DNA from: Zootoca vivipara
Lineage: Eukaryota
DNA length: 64,000 bases
Direction: 5' to 3'
Assembly: GCF_963506605.1 (NCBI RefSeq)
Contig: NC_083294.1
Location: forward strand, 37,448,001-37,512,000
How positions within the stretch are numbered: position 1 is the first letter of the stretch; the number at the start of each line of letters is the position of its first letter. The notes under the pieces are model-generated. The model was not told the DNA's origin and searched no databases. It was given only the letters and a program-made list of their open reading frames with translations. Below, piece after piece: positions 7,079 to 23,087 of the stretch. Made by a program: the position numbers and the translations under genes.

Positions 7079-7120
7079 ATCACAGAATTGTAGCATTGGA
7101 AGGGGCCAAGGCAGTTCATC
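7079..7120 (-). mobile_element. 3' CR1-type tail half of a tRNA-Lys-derived SINE, interrupted at 7120
   Basis: atcacagaattgtagcattggaagggg...ttcatc resembles the reverse of a CR1-type tail; the continuation (tagtccaacc...) is at 23008. Confidence 0.65.
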
Positions 7121-7438
7121 CAGTGGTGTGCAAACTTTTTTCAAAGAGGGCCAGATTTGATGAAGTGAAGGGCTGTGAGGGCCGACCAAACAACGGCCAA
7201 CCAAAGTTGTTAACCTTTTTTTTTTTAGGATTGAGGATGTTGATCTTTTTTATGATTTTACCCCAAAGTTGTTGAGCTTTTTTAGGATTGAGGTTAAATA
7301 AACTGCCACAGGGGATGGATTGAACCTTCCATCGGGCCGGATTAGGCCCCCGAAATGGATTTTGTGCCCTGCCCCAGCACTCAGAGCCATTCACTTCATC
7401 AAATCTTGCCCTCTTTGGAAAACGTTGCGACAACACTG
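7121..7438. mobile_element. hAT MITE lacking its right TIR, followed by an inverted copy of its left end
   Basis: CAGTGGTGTGCAAACT at 7121; 7390-7438 is the reverse complement of 7121-7170; homologous pieces at 17257-17433 (-) and 22855-23003 (+). Confidence 0.8.
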
Positions 7439-8115
7439 AAGGGGTAAAGTCAAAGAGTTCAGAGGAGAAGAGAAGGGAGTGCTGGATACTGACCCCCCCC
7501 ATGCAGCTTCTGTTGGAAAAGTGGTGTAGTTTAAGCAGCCCGGTCACCCCACCCCTTCCCATTGTGCCCTGCCCCTTTCCCTGCAAGGGTTCAGGTGAAT
7601 GCAAAACACCTTGGGGCAAAGCAAGTTTTTTGGGGGGGCTGGGGGGATGCAATGACAGGGGATGATGGAGGGGGAGATAGCAGGCAGGTAAGCTGCTGGG
7701 CAGGTGGGGGAGGGAGACCCCCCCCCCAAAAAAAGTGAAAGGAGGTGGGTGTGCAGCTGAGGTCTCCCCCATTTCAAGTATTCCGAATAGCAATATGGAT
7801 ACTATAAACACATGCAGAAATACAAACATTTCCTAAATTTCAGATGAGTTTCCTGCATTCCAAGGGATTCGACAACCTATTTCTTAATAGGTTTAATTGC
7901 ATTTGGTTCTTTTTCTCTGCATGTCATTCCTTGAACAGCTTCCTGTACAAAGATAAGGCTTGCTTTCATTGCTCTGTTCATTTGCACATTTGACTAGTGT
8001 TGTGTGGAGGGAAATGCAACCACTGGGCTGAAATATGTCCCCTCCTGCCTCCCTGTGTTTGAAAAATTGCCTCTTTCCCCTCAGCTGCTATGTCTGTTTG
8101 TGAAATCACAGGAGA
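7439..8115 (+). repeat. Local duplication block A, copy 1
   Basis: Alignable to 17434-18262 (+) and 22122-22853 (-); the ORF track shows the shared MFVFLHVFIVSILLFGILEMG translation. Confidence 0.92.
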
Positions 8116-8470
8116 CCATACAGAGACAGGCTGTGGGAAACTAGCTCTCGGGGGGTATTAATAAAGAGATGGTGACTGAGGAGCCCCCCCCCCTTGTGAC
8201 ACATGTGGCATGTGGGCTCCATGATAACCTCAGAAACCTTCCTTAGCACCCACCAAGGCTCCCTGACCCTCCACTTCCCATGTTAATCACGATACGATAC
8301 GATAATAAAAGACAAGACAAGACAAGACAAGACAAGACAATACTCTTCATTGGCATTTCAAGTTAAGACTTTTCAAAATGGCATGAGATACAAAGTCTTT
8401 CATCTTCGGGGTGTGTGCATTTATTAATAAAGAAATTATGACTGAGGAGCCACACACCCCGCCTTGGGAC

Positions 8471-8776
8471 TGTTAATATTTTCATCCCTCCCTCTTCTGT
8501 CAATCTCCTGACTCAGTGAAGAGAGAGAGGGGAGGAGTCTTCCTTGGTAACTGTTATTCCTAACTGTCAGTTCTGGAGAGTGTGTTCTGAGGTAAAGATG
8601 CGTTCTTACTTATGTTAGATGACTGAAACTCACACAGTCTGTATATTACAGTTATATATGTTTAGTTTAATAAAAAAAATAAGAATTACTTCAAAACCTC
8701 TGAAGCTGAACTTCATCTGTTTATTGGTGCTCAGGGCTAGAAGTTGTGAGTCCGGATATATGGTTTAAATCCATCA
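8471..8776 (+). mobile_element. Solo LTR (306 bp)
   Basis: TG...CA, AATAAA at ~8669, 5-bp TSD gggac/gtgac; empty site visible in the paralogous segment at 8191-8210 (cccttgtgacacatgtgg). Confidence 0.88.
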
Positions 8777-9005
8777 GTGACACGCGTGGCAGGTGGGCTC
8801 CATGGTAACCACAGGAAACCCTCCTTAGCACCCACCAAGACCCCCTGACCTCCAATTTTTAAAAAGTTTCCCCAAAATCTGTTACTTTTTATAGTGCTGC
8901 AAAACCGTTTGTTTTGGAAGTTGATGGGTTGGTATTATTTCTTTATTTTGCCCTTTGTGAGTGATTAATAAACTGGTTCCTTTTACTTAAGGTCTCTGGA
9001 TCCTT

Positions 9006-9223
9006 TGAAATAAAGTGATGTGGACAAAATGGGTTGATTAGGAAACCTTTTTATTATACACACTTGCAAGTGGGGTAACACAAGATCAGCCACACCTTCA
9101 TCAGGAAAACACATCTTATAAAGTAGCTTCTCCGGCCGCATGTCCCTCCTTCAACGCCCACAAGAAGGGGCGTGCCCATTGACAGAAGTATCGCATTTGC
9201 CTCATTAACATTTTTCCATTCCA
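9006..9223 (-). mobile_element. ~218-bp LTR-like segment, copy 1 of 3
   Basis: Termini TGAAAT/ATTCCA; TATA-like and AATAAA motifs on the minus strand; absent from the paralogous flank at 22030-22050. Confidence 0.55.
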
Positions 9224-9389
9224 CTTCCCATGTTAATCACAAGACAAGACAATACAAATACAATACAATACAATACAAATACAATACAATACAATACAAA
9301 TACAATACAAATACAATACAAATGCCTTTATTGCCATTTCAAGTTAAGACATTTCAAAATGTCCTTTTACTTAACTTCTCTGGAACCTT

Positions 9390-20575: not shown

Positions 20576-21027
20576 ATGCTGTGGAGCAAGGAGAAGGCAA
20601 GTACAGTTTACTTGCTGGTGGGATCGCTACTTGAAGGCGACTGATATTAAAGCCCTGAAGCAGGTTGATGTCTGGCAATGGGACCTGGCAAGGCTGCAGC
20701 TGGTGGATGGTTGACAGATGAGTTAGCATTCAGGCTAGCGGATGCCGCGAGGCTATGCTGGCTGAGATGGATGCAAACTGGCTTGGAAGCCTTGTTTGTT
20801 ACCCGGCAGCCAAACAGAGGAGGAATCTGAGGGGGATCCTGTCGGATGGTGGCCATCCCACTCACTTGTTTGCCTCTGCCTTACAGGGATGCGTGGAGCC
20901 GGTGAGGTTTTCCCCAAGTCCAGCCTTCAAAGTCATGAAGAGAACCACAGGGCGTCCCTATTTCCATCGGAGAAATGAACGTGAAATACTGGCAGCAAGC
21001 AATGGAAAAGGCCGTGACCACACCTGA
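20576..21027 (+). CDS. Hypothetical spliced 53-aa ORF (20576-20596 + 20887-21027)
   Basis: MLWSKEK|GCVEPVRFSPSPAFKVMKRTTGRPYFHRRNEREILAASNGKGRDHT; differences between copies are mostly non-synonymous. Confidence 0.2.
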
Positions 21028-21124
21028 GAGAAGGAGCCTTGAAGGGAGACTGCCAGGCGGACATCTGCTGCATTACAAATGATGGGGCAGTGGGGAGAGA
21101 GAAGAAAATGAGGGAGGAAACATT

Positions 21125-21844
21125 AGGCCACATTAGGCGCACCATCCATTGGAAGTGCTATGAAGACGCTTTGAACAGGAATGGCTTCCCCTCAGGAATT
21201 CTGGGAACTGTAGGTGGTTAAGGGAACGGAGGGTTGTTAGGATGGTTAAGGATTAGGGTTAGGATTACAGTTAAGGTTAGAGTTACGGTAGGGTTAGTGT
21301 TGGGGTTGGGGCAGGGGCAGGGTTTCCTTTTCAGGGAACTCTGGGAATTGTAGCTCTAGTTAAGGGCTAAGTGTTAGCATTGGGGTTAGAGTTAGGGTTA
21401 GGGTTAGTATCAGGGTGGGGTAGGGTTAGGGTTAGGGTTCCCTTCTTGCCAGGGAACTCTGGGAATTGTAGCTCTAGTTGAGGGTTGAGGATTAGGGTTA
21501 GAGTTAGCGTCAGGGGTAGGGGTAGGGTTCCCTTCTTGTCAGGGAACTCTGGGAATTGTAGCTCTAGTTGAGGGTTGAGGATTAGGGTTAGAGTTAGCGT
21601 CAGGGGTAGGGGTAGGGTTCCCTTCTTGTCAGGGAACTCTGGGAATTGTAGCTCTAGTTGAGGGTTAGGGGTTAGGGTTGGCAGGGAACTCTGGGAATTG
21701 TAGTTCTGGGAGGGGACCGGGTGTGTGTGTGTCCTAACAACTCTCTGCACCCTTTTCAAACTATAGCTACCAGATTCTTTGGGGCAAGAAGCCATGAGTG
21801 TTCAAAGCGGCTTCATAGGGGTTGAAATGGTGTGGATGTGGCCC
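21125..21844. mobile_element. Harbinger-like MITE with a telomere-like array (90-bp period)
   Basis: TIR aggccacatt/gatgtggccc; agggaactct at 21451, 21541 and 21631; TTAGGG variants 21245-21680. Confidence 0.7.
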
Positions 21845-22121
21845 TGGCCTCCCTCACCCCACAGCCTCTTATTATTGAAGAATCGAAAGGATATCCCCAT
21901 TCAAATCTCTCGGAAACAGGAAGAAGAAAGACATTGTATCTCATGCCATTTTGAAATCTCTTAACTTGAAATGCCAATAAAGGTATTTGTATTGTAATTG
22001 CATTGCATTGCATTGTATTATGATTAACATGGGAAGTTAAGGAAGATCTTAAGTCAAAGGAACCAGTTTATTTATCTCTCACAAAGGGCAAAATAAACTA
22101 ATCCCTTAACCAACAAATAAG

Positions 22122-22853
22122 GAGGAGGACATTTTTCAGCCCAGGGGCTGCATTTCCCTCCACACAACACTAGTCAAATGTACAAATGAACAGAGCAATG
22201 AAAGCAAGCCTTGTCTTTGGACAGGAAGCTGTTCAAGGAATGACATGCAGAGAAAAAGCACCAAACCCAATTGAAGAAATAGGTTGTCGAACCCCCTGGA
22301 ATGCAGGAAACTCATCTGAAATTTAGGAAATGTTTGTATTTCTGCATGTGTTTATAGTATCCATATTGCTATTTGGAATACTCGAAATGGGGGGGGAACC
22401 TCAGCTGCACACCCACTTCCTTTTACTTTTGGGGGGGGTCTCCTTCCCTCACCTGCCCAGCAACTTCCCTGCCTGCTATCTGCCCCTCCATCATCCCCCT
22501 GGCATTGCATCCTCCCCCCAGCCCCACCCCCAAAGCTTGCTGTACCCCAAGGCATTTTGCACTCACCTGAACCCTTGCAGGGAGAGGGGCAGGGCACAAT
22601 GGGAAGGGGCAGGGTGACCGGGCTGCTTAAACCACACCCCTTTTCCAATGGAATTGGCATGGGGGGGTCCTATGAGAGAGAACAACAACAGAACAGAACA
22701 AAGAAGATGGAAGTGGCACACAGTTCCTTCTGTTCCCATGCTTCCAAAGAATGGAATGTCAACACACAGAGCATGTGATCCCATAGTCACACACACCCTG
22801 CAGCACGGGAGAGAATGAAACTCTCTTCTCTGCTTCTCTTGAACTCTTTGACT
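22122..22853 (-). repeat. Block A, copy 3 (inverted)
   Basis: Reverse complement of 17440-18185. Confidence 0.92.
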
Positions 22854-22854
22854 T

Positions 22855-23003
22855 TTTTTAGATGGAAGTTGTTGAGCTTTTTTTAAGATTGAAGTTGTTG
22901 AGGTTTTTTAGGATTTTACTCCAGGAAATAAACTTCCAGAGGAGCAGGATTAAACCAACCAGCGGGCCGGATTAGGCCCCGAAATGGACTTTGGACATAC
23001 CTG
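22855..23003 (+). mobile_element. Right half and right TIR of the 7121 hAT MITE
   Basis: cgggccggattaggcccc.gaaatgga shared with 7333-7360; ends ACTTTGGACATACCTG. Confidence 0.8.
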
Positions 23004-23087
23004 ATTCTAGTCCAACCTGCTGCCATATTTTGCCCAACATACGACTTGAACTCATGACCCTGAGATTAAGAATCTCATGCTCTGAGC
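23004..23087 (-). mobile_element. tRNA-Lys(CTT)-derived SINE head half
   Basis: Reverse complement agagcatgagattCTTaatctcagggtcatgagttcaag...gttgggca resembles vertebrate tRNA-Lys-CTT; leads into ggttggactaga (CR1-type tail). Confidence 0.8.

Follow-up and report, generated by a model that had tools for sequence, protein, structure and literature searches.

A block of 15,883 bases (positions 7121-23003), bounded by outward-facing ends of hAT transposable elements of the miniature inverted-repeat kind (MITEs), lies inside one minus-strand short interspersed element (SINE) of the lizard Zootoca vivipara. We analysed it within a window of 64,000 nt (NC_083294.1, 37,448,001-37,512,000, forward strand), to which all positions given here refer. 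The reading that we favour, at a probability of roughly 0.45, is the en-bloc integration of 7121-23003 by alternative hAT transposition; growth of the block in place is its close rival, and the data at hand do not separate the two. Since both outer breaks fall on MITE termini, in the right orientation and at a preferred target, an origin without transposase is very unlikely. The data show the termini, the target preference of their family, that the SINE halves are contiguous, how the block is built inside and the relative ages of its parts; under the favoured reading, both outer junctions would stem from a single transposase event, and the cargo would have been assembled before it arrived.

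A SINE interrupted at a preferred hAT target

The first-pass annotation of this stretch, made from the letters alone, had proposed that one SINE is split at 7120/23004. This holds, as the halves are consecutive, lie on the same strand and overlap only by GAT. On the plus strand, the left flank reads ...ggaaggggccaaggcagttcatc up to 7120 and the block starts at 7121 with cagtggtgtgcaaact; at the other edge, ...ggactttggacatacctg extends to 23003 and is followed by attctagtccaacctgctgcc.... On the minus strand, the head of the SINE runs into ...GGTTGGACTAGAAT at 23004, and the tail, reverse-complemented from 7120, starts GATGAACTGCCTTGGCCCCTTCC... (the minus strand continues GATGAACTGCCTTGGCCCCTTCCAATGCTACAATTCTGTGAT...); across the join, an uninterrupted SINE is expected to read ..TTCATCTAGTCC... 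The window holds two Bov-B-type relatives without such an interruption, at 13674 (plus strand) and 18284 (minus strand); they read GGTTG(G)A(C/T)TAGATGACCCT, and the core of the intact relatives is ..TCATCTAGTCC... Because these two read through the join, the halves are consecutive parts of one SINE. Its 3′ core matches the GGTTGGAYTAGATGACCC motif of these two relatives, a comparison made within the window.

The limits of the halves, as first drawn, needed correction. The 3′ (Bov-B-type) half, on the minus strand, occupies 7060-7120, with a firm end at 7120 and an uncertain start (7037-7079) that perhaps lies near 7060 rather than at 7079, while the 5′ half, likewise on the minus strand, begins at 23004 and reaches 23103 rather than 23087. 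The tRNA-like head of the latter (23031-23103, minus strand) aligns with the whole length of the Rfam tRNA model at 25.5 bits (E = 0.0016), which is under the gathering score of 29. With this head match below the gathering score, the split element appears to be one tRNA-derived, Bov-B-tailed SINE, a candidate of the Sauria type, the family background of which is given in PMC13295347. Within the window, blastn found no other copy of the split SINE, and the two Bov-B-type relatives were aligned instead; no tRNA genes or Rfam families were found above the gathering thresholds. Read depth climbs from about 7000, so that the stretch of the left SINE half is multicopy. Two candidate duplications around the SINE were discarded: cTGTGATA (7052-7059) and tTATGATA (23104-23111) match at 6 of 8 positions, which chance alone would give in about a quarter of cases, and are not relied on, whereas CAAGAG, at 7031-7036 and 23125-23130, lies 22 bases past the tRNA-like 5′ end and is taken as chance.

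Directly inside the SINE halves lie hAT ends, as the annotation had stated. The left inverted repeat, CAGTGGTGTGCAAACT, begins at 7121, and the right terminus, with the reverse complement CAGGTATGTCCAAAGT, lies at 23003. Both ends carry the YARNG/CAG start motif defined for hAT inverted repeats (PMC3014272) and agree with each other at 11 of 16 positions; the reverse-complemented right end agrees at 13 of 16 with CAGGGGTGTCCAAACT, the end of a sister sub-family present in the reads. Four runs representing three lizard species (organisms A, B and C below) were compared with positions 6000-9299 only, namely X15 contigs and X22 raw reads from the same species and X2 and X4 from related species. 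Just before 7121, loose ends occur in 525 raw reads and, for each species, in 91-102 contigs. Their flanks are unlike one another (agreement 0.36), and the 162 reads with a start at 7120 amount to the quarter that chance predicts. Loose ends with such unlike flanks make 7121 the exact terminus of the family. The word depth of the X15 contigs is 87,146 in the bin 7100-7209, against about 10-16 in the single-copy flank, and the raw-read depth over the first 90 element bases is about 700, against less than 1 for single-copy DNA. The MITE family therefore numbers many hundreds of copies or more, and the block ends, judged by their repeats, belong to it as a Charlie-like hAT family. Squamate genomes contain tens of thousands of hAT MITEs.

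On the left side, which this comparison covered, three runs give CTCTAGAG as the end of the family's flank consensus before 7121, and the fourth gives TTCTAAAG. It corresponds to the palindromic NTCTAGAN, and the 8-bp length of the duplication is deduced from this palindrome and from published lizard families. Non-autonomous hAT families of lizards whose inverted repeats start with CAG... are given the same NTCTAGAN target in Table 1 of PMC3014272. In the SINE, it is the 8-mer ATCTAGTC that holds TCTAG in the register of the family. The right flank opens with ATTCTAGTC, that is, ATCTAGTC plus one T; the left flank ends in ..TTCATC, with ATC kept and TAGTC gone, a 5-base loss flush with the intact terminus. 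The target-site duplication is thus as unclean as had been noted, and the site of the block fits the family target, but with a damaged duplication. Among all MITE termini, no convincing pair of matching 8-mers, a signature of alternative transposition, was found (AGTTCATC, TACCCCTT, TAACTCTT, CCCCAGCA and ATTCTAGT).

Composition and relative ages of the block

The inverted repeats that the annotation had placed at the two edges stand as termini; the elements behind them turned out to be a whole MITE with an inverted fragment on the left and a copy lacking its left end on the right. M1 (7121-7371, plus strand) has an intact left terminus, CAGTGGTGTG..., a whole body and a right end that is degenerate or fused. 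It is followed by cccc (7372-7375) and by A2 (7376-7438, minus strand), a left-end fragment (61-63 bases) from another copy of the MITE, whose terminus at 7438 abuts the flank-unit copy U_A. The junction at 7360-7376 is of the end-joining type and admits two competing alignments. In the first, the four bases are filler after the degenerate right end; in the second, they are part of a 5-7-base microhomology at ACTTTGG/CCAAAGT, a motif common to the right end and the inverted body, where the sequence switches into an inverted MITE truncated at 61-79 bases. At the opposite edge, M_C (22853-23003, plus strand) retains an intact right terminus, ...GGACTTTGGACATACCTG, and has lost about 95 bp, comprising its left end and 7 flank bases. 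Between the two lies M_B (17259-17433, minus strand), truncated at its right end, of which no remnant was found elsewhere in the block; at 17433, its left terminus meets U_B across a junction identical to that between A2 and U_A. A2 and M_B share this junction to flank DNA, cactg|aag(g/a)g(g/t)taaagtcaaagag, and M_C adjoins an inverted copy of the same flank DNA (U), so the MITE-plus-flank unit is present three times.

The annotation had also entertained growth inside a single MITE. Taken as a nested insertion, this fails, because M1 and M_C overlap (7220-7364 matches 22853-22993) and the end pieces are not the complementary halves of one element. As regards the outer termini, the 5′ terminus of M1 and the 3′ terminus of M_C are both on the plus strand, in the normal relative orientation of a two-copy arrangement. 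M1 and A2 together (7121-7438) fold as one hairpin whose stem measures about 62 bp (-67.6 kcal/mol, z -6.7); on this folding model, the stretch by itself is shaped like a MITE of 318 bp, its inverted repeats being long, and could be mobilisable or act as a replication-stall site. Elsewhere in the window, a related hAT MITE 3′ end lies at 53460-53522, beside a tandem-repeat tract and near the gap at 52785-52943, and reads ...GGGCCGGATTTGGCCCCCGGGCCTTGTGTTTGACACCCGTG followed by CTCTAATC; the GGCCGGATT boxes of M_C and of this element are equally far from their respective termini.

In an all-against-all comparison, 11,244 of the 15,883 block bases have a paralogue within the block, while neither flank (6000-7120 and 23004-24500) has one there, which upholds the earlier observation that the local duplications are confined to the block. 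Block matches elsewhere in the window are interspersed repeats in the spacers only. The single run of N in the window is that at 52785-52943, and the block itself is gap-free.

The block consists of two inverted arms around a centre. The left arm, on the plus strand (7376-13722), runs in the order A2, U_A, region III, T and V. U_A (7439-8115) lacks about 150 bp found in the other flank-unit copies, U_B and U_C, and region III (8116-11688, plus strand), a feature of the left arm only, comprises tandem and inverted re-copies of modules from the U end, the linker, the T start and the T end. T_L (11689-13403, plus strand) is the left copy of the 1.8-kb T segment, with an 83-bp tandem array and TTAGGG-like runs; V_A (13402-13722, plus strand) ends the arm with an old Bov-B/SINE fragment and a (TAA)n run. 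The right arm, on the minus strand from 23003 to 18262, is ordered M_C′, U_C, linker, T, module X with a spacer, and V. It comprises U_C (22120-22855), the third and inverted flank-unit copy; the T-U linker (22016-22119), copies of which are found in region III (22044-22097 matches 8942-8995 and 10780-10833); T_R (20179-22015), the inverted partner of T_L; a stretch specific to this arm (18536-20178), made up of a 1.3-kb spacer without paralogue and module X (19841-20178); and V_C (18262-18535), the inverted partner of V_A. U_C, the linker, T_R and V_C are all on the minus strand. The centre consists of a spacer (13723-17258), which has no in-block paralogue and holds interspersed repeats common to 31.8, 41.2 and 51.4 kb, followed by M_B′ and U_B (17434-18266, plus strand). 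Since the arms face each other by their V ends, not their U ends, we rejected a fold-back palindrome formed from a hairpin-capped flank.

Several smaller features were seen along the way. The T segment contains tandem arrays of 83-118 bp with TTAGGG-like runs, and those at 11999-12295 and 21255-21679 (units of 83, 90 and 118 bp) occupy matching positions in the inverted T arms; they are therefore older than the inverted duplication, and their unit structure has diverged since. In the central spacer, an inverted pair at 15020-15391 (plus strand) and 16253-16472 (minus strand) is related to 41205-41561 and 51433-51772. Two modules, 8514-8845 and 11362-11689, are near-identical (1 substitution), with GG at 8734-8735 where 13 independent contigs have CA. 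The module, which begins CAGTGAAGAGAG, is present at about 40x single-copy depth in the species of the window, at zero depth in organism B and at low depth in organism C, and looks like a young, lineage-specific repeat family. The ten long open reading frames searched (116-237 aa) gave no Pfam domain, and coding cargo or a transposase was rejected on that count, shorter or decayed coding remnants being outside this search.

Divergence was expressed as Kimura two-parameter (K2P) distance, from substitutions only. It amounts to 0.075 between U_A and U_B, 0.081 between U_A and U_C, 0.068 between T_L (11689-13403) and T_R (read as 22015-20179) and 0.039 between U_B and U_C, and it ranges from 0.003, the value for the near-identical modules, to 0.096 among the region III copies. 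The inverted arms differ by 7-8% in substitutions and the tandem duplications by 0.3-7.6%. For comparison, organism B departs from the single-copy left flank by 4.4% (31/712 bases) and organism C by 5.0% (47/933), and on these substitution counts the arms are older than the divergence of the flanks between species. MITE comparisons, made on short pieces (60-135 bases) and therefore noisy, gave 0.114 for M1 and M_B, 0.148 for M1 and M_C and 0.177 for M_B and M_C. The distance of 0.148 between M1 and M_C, set against 0.068-0.081 for the arms, makes it unlikely that these two are sister copies derived from one resident MITE as the arms formed. In the units of M_B and M_C, the MITE parts (17259-17433 and 22853-23003) differ by 0.177, whereas the U parts (17441-18266 and 22120-22855) differ by 0.039. 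This mismatch suggests gene conversion, in which either the U copies, inverted to each other, took part or the MITEs were converted by other members of their family.

Possible origins: arrival as a unit, growth in place and others

Under the favoured reading, en-bloc alternative transposition, 7121-23003 would be one hAT-terminated insertion unit, with the 5′ terminus of M1 at its left, the 3′ terminus of M_C at its right, both in the same orientation, and dead inner ends (degenerate or fused in M1, deleted in M_C). A hAT transposase supplied in trans would have paired the two outer termini and inserted everything between them into the TCTAG core of the SINE, whether by macrotransposon cut-and-paste or by the reversed-ends or re-replication route that produces the composite insertions of maize. 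The cargo would be host DNA without recognisable coding sequence, already carrying an inverted duplication of MITE′-U-T-V on arrival and changed further by local tandem duplication thereafter. We count for this reading that the outer ends are intact and the inner ones dead, that the termini and the target are those of the family, that the 7360-7376 junction resembles those inside maize composite insertions, that M1 and M_C are further apart than the arms, that the arms are older than the flank divergence between species, that the ten open reading frames searched gave no Pfam domain, and that an X15 contig agrees with the assembly across the left SINE/MITE junction. Much of what the annotation had offered as a composite element is retained in it, namely the outward-facing plus-strand termini, the target site and the maize-like architecture; as for the rest, 3 of the 8 duplicated bases are left, and neither an empty site nor a donor or sister copy was seen.

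Several findings weigh against this reading. A clean 8-bp duplication around the block is absent, with ATC only on the left and an extra T on the right, and no empty site, donor site or second composite copy was observed in the window or in the reads and contigs over 6000-9299. Of the two junctions, the comparison with reads and contigs covered the left one (6000-9299). There, record 2 of X15 (145 bases) agrees with 7005-7149 without a single difference over the SINE/MITE junction, with 116 bases in flank and SINE and 29 in the MITE, which is under the 31-base bridging rule of that comparison, although the junction words are present. The letters private to U_A (positions 7522, 7528, 7599, 7689 and 7908) occur in no contig or read of the four runs; all contigs and reads compared show the U_B/U_C letter at the five sites, although contigs can drop variants. 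U_A as assembled is thus without independent confirmation, and its private letters could reflect a haplotype difference, gene conversion or a consensus issue in the assembly of the left arm. Furthermore, the MITE parts are oddly more diverged than the DNA that adjoins them, with the caveat that short-piece estimates are noisy. Finally, if the block is drawn as a circle, M_C, M1, A2 and U_A fall together in one fold-back centre, which is not what a simple macrotransposon predicts.

The last of these observations is explained by growth in place, a close rival that we regard as tentative but serious. Here, a single MITE of about 250 bp in the SINE would have suffered a break, probably made by transposase, which was repaired from both ends by copying an ectopic MITE′-U-T-V, through abortive gap repair or microhomology-mediated replication, before the ends were joined; M1 would be the retained element and M_C largely donor-derived, and later tandem duplications and transposon insertions would have enlarged the block. 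Such a history retains both SINE junctions, yields inverted arms with MITE ends facing outward, as if both broken ends had primed on one donor, and explains why the block, once circularly permuted, reads as a palindrome with one MITE at its centre. It can read 7360-7376 as a template switch at ACTTTGG/CCAAAGT, and it agrees with a divergence of M1 from M_C and M_B of the kind seen between unrelated family members; the exact loss of five flank bases flush with the intact left terminus, too, suggests that the DNA was cut and rejoined here. Donors are at hand as well: all three species have multiple copies of U-like DNA (5-9 distinct contigs at each site, at a depth of 10-85x single-copy), and relatives of the cargo therefore exist elsewhere. 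Against it stand the need for more than 5 kb of ectopic synthesis at each end, with further switches to account for the M_B-U_B unit and the spacer, and a prediction about related species. If the arms were born at this locus, their 7-8% divergence, compared with 4.4-5.0% between the flanks of the species, means that the block predates the species split and should be carried by the sister species.

The only informative contig of organism B matches 6814-7036 at 97% and then continues with at least 113 bases unlike the window. Contigs of organism A break as well, at 7034, as do those of organism C, at 7025, and read depth places a moderately repeated element in 6880-7036. With breaks in three species and this read depth near 7036, the break in organism B may be a repeat boundary and not an empty allele, and we rejected dating of the insertion from this contig as too ambiguous. 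Further out in the left flank, 6440-6660 is a very high-copy repeat, with a depth of about 4,800 against 10-16.

Homologous recombination between MITEs, without transposase, is an improbable source of the block. A circle carrying the interior and one MITE, popped from a locus flanked by two direct MITEs, would have integrated into a resident MITE, or a long tract of ectopic gene conversion would have had the same effect. An arrangement of MITE, interior and MITE within both original flanks is what circle integration is expected to leave, M_C joined to M1 likewise makes the block a circular permutation of a palindrome around one MITE, and the many hundreds or more of family copies could serve as partners. 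The available homology, however, extends over a short stretch of about 150-250 bp with an identity of only about 85%, and this route predicts an intact 8-bp duplication on both sides, whereas the left one is damaged.

We consider an assembly artefact, in which repeats were collapsed or mis-joined so that the SINE halves are not 15.9 kb apart or the order of the interior is wrong, to be highly improbable. In its favour, direct and inverted repeats crowd the region, the U_A-private letters are missing from independent data of the same species, and the independent check was confined to the left junction. On the other hand, the paralogues are mostly 4-12% diverged and easily separated by long reads, the block contains no gap, exact independent contigs cover 6000-7149 (in X15, 6000-7034, together with record 2) and 9056-9232, and the block-specific GG at 8734-8735 is present in raw reads of X22. 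Scarcely credible is a history of two SINE copies, each hit by a MITE at a TCTAG hot spot, with ordinary DNA between them and the inner SINE halves deleted. The core does hold the preferred target of the family, making recurrent genome-wide hits expected, but two deletions ending exactly at MITE termini would be required, and the halves complement each other, overlap by 3 bases and have the same orientation.

Relation to known hAT composites

Alternative transposition of hAT elements is experimentally well documented in maize, and the P elements of Drosophila do comparable things. In the literature that we searched, no natural vertebrate example of alternative hAT transposition was found. A close likeness to the lizard block is offered by the Ac/fAc composite insertions and Ac macrotransposons of maize, which are hAT structures with outward termini around 10-28 kb of duplicated host DNA (PMC4270019, PMC9910405). 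Composite insertions of 14-24 kb have internal junctions with filler or microhomology (PMC4270019), and hAT units of 10-28 kb can act as macrotransposons, undergoing stepwise rearrangement (PMC9910405). As in the lizard block, one end element is whole and the other fractured, and inversions and duplications progress within the unit. The size class is alike (14.3, 19.3, 23.6 and 28 kb in maize and 15.9 kb in the lizard); the junctions have 0-3 bases of microhomology or filler in maize and a 4-base filler or 5-7 bases of microhomology in the lizard block. The maize cases, however, come with perfect 8-bp duplications, known progenitor alleles and observed excision, whereas the duplication around the lizard block is damaged (3 + 9 bases) and neither donor nor excision was seen. 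Moreover, the end elements of the lizard block are 250-bp MITEs, with no transposase nearby among the ten open reading frames searched, and the host is a vertebrate.

Lizard hAT elements swollen by extraneous DNA, including other transposons, are known from Anolis carolinensis, where hobo_AC, which also has non-autonomous families, reaches 9-15 kb (PMC3014272). The lizard block resembles it as a lizard hAT structure of about 15 kb in a setting where non-autonomous copies far outnumber autonomous ones, and it resembles the Charlie-like families of Anolis in its CAG... inverted repeats and NTCTAGAN targets (PMC3014272). In contrast, hobo_AC has many similar copies with one cognate end pair, while the block is a single known instance with two separate MITE copies; its inverted repeat, CAGTGGTGTGCAAACT, points to a Charlie-like MITE family different from hobo_AC.

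Pack-MULE and Pack-hAT elements likewise hold foreign host DNA between cognate termini, and the filler or microhomology in the block fits template switching. Pack-type capture by non-autonomous DNA transposons proceeds through abortive gap repair. Such elements are usually 1-3 kb long with a single end pair, whereas the lizard block has two overlapping MITE bodies, two other MITE copies inside and a 15-kb cargo. By analogy with maize, it may be said to work like a hAT composite insertion or macrotransposon, and we do not file it as a proven member of that class.

It is a rather doubtful extension of these observations that lacertid hAT MITE pairs are a vertebrate counterpart of Ac/Ds, in which a recently active transposase, supplied in trans, moved or re-replicated about 16 kb as one unit. 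If this were true, squamate genomes would have in their MITE pairs a permanent means of duplicating and inverting segments, and the recurrence of MITE-plus-flank junctions in the block would record several successive rounds of this process. Should the block instead have grown in place, it would provide a worked example of how a MITE break seeds complex inverted and tandem duplication. Confirmation of the block as a transposed unit would turn it into a concrete locus for population and cross-species testing, and would mean that small MITEs can duplicate and relocate large segments of host DNA, regulatory DNA included.

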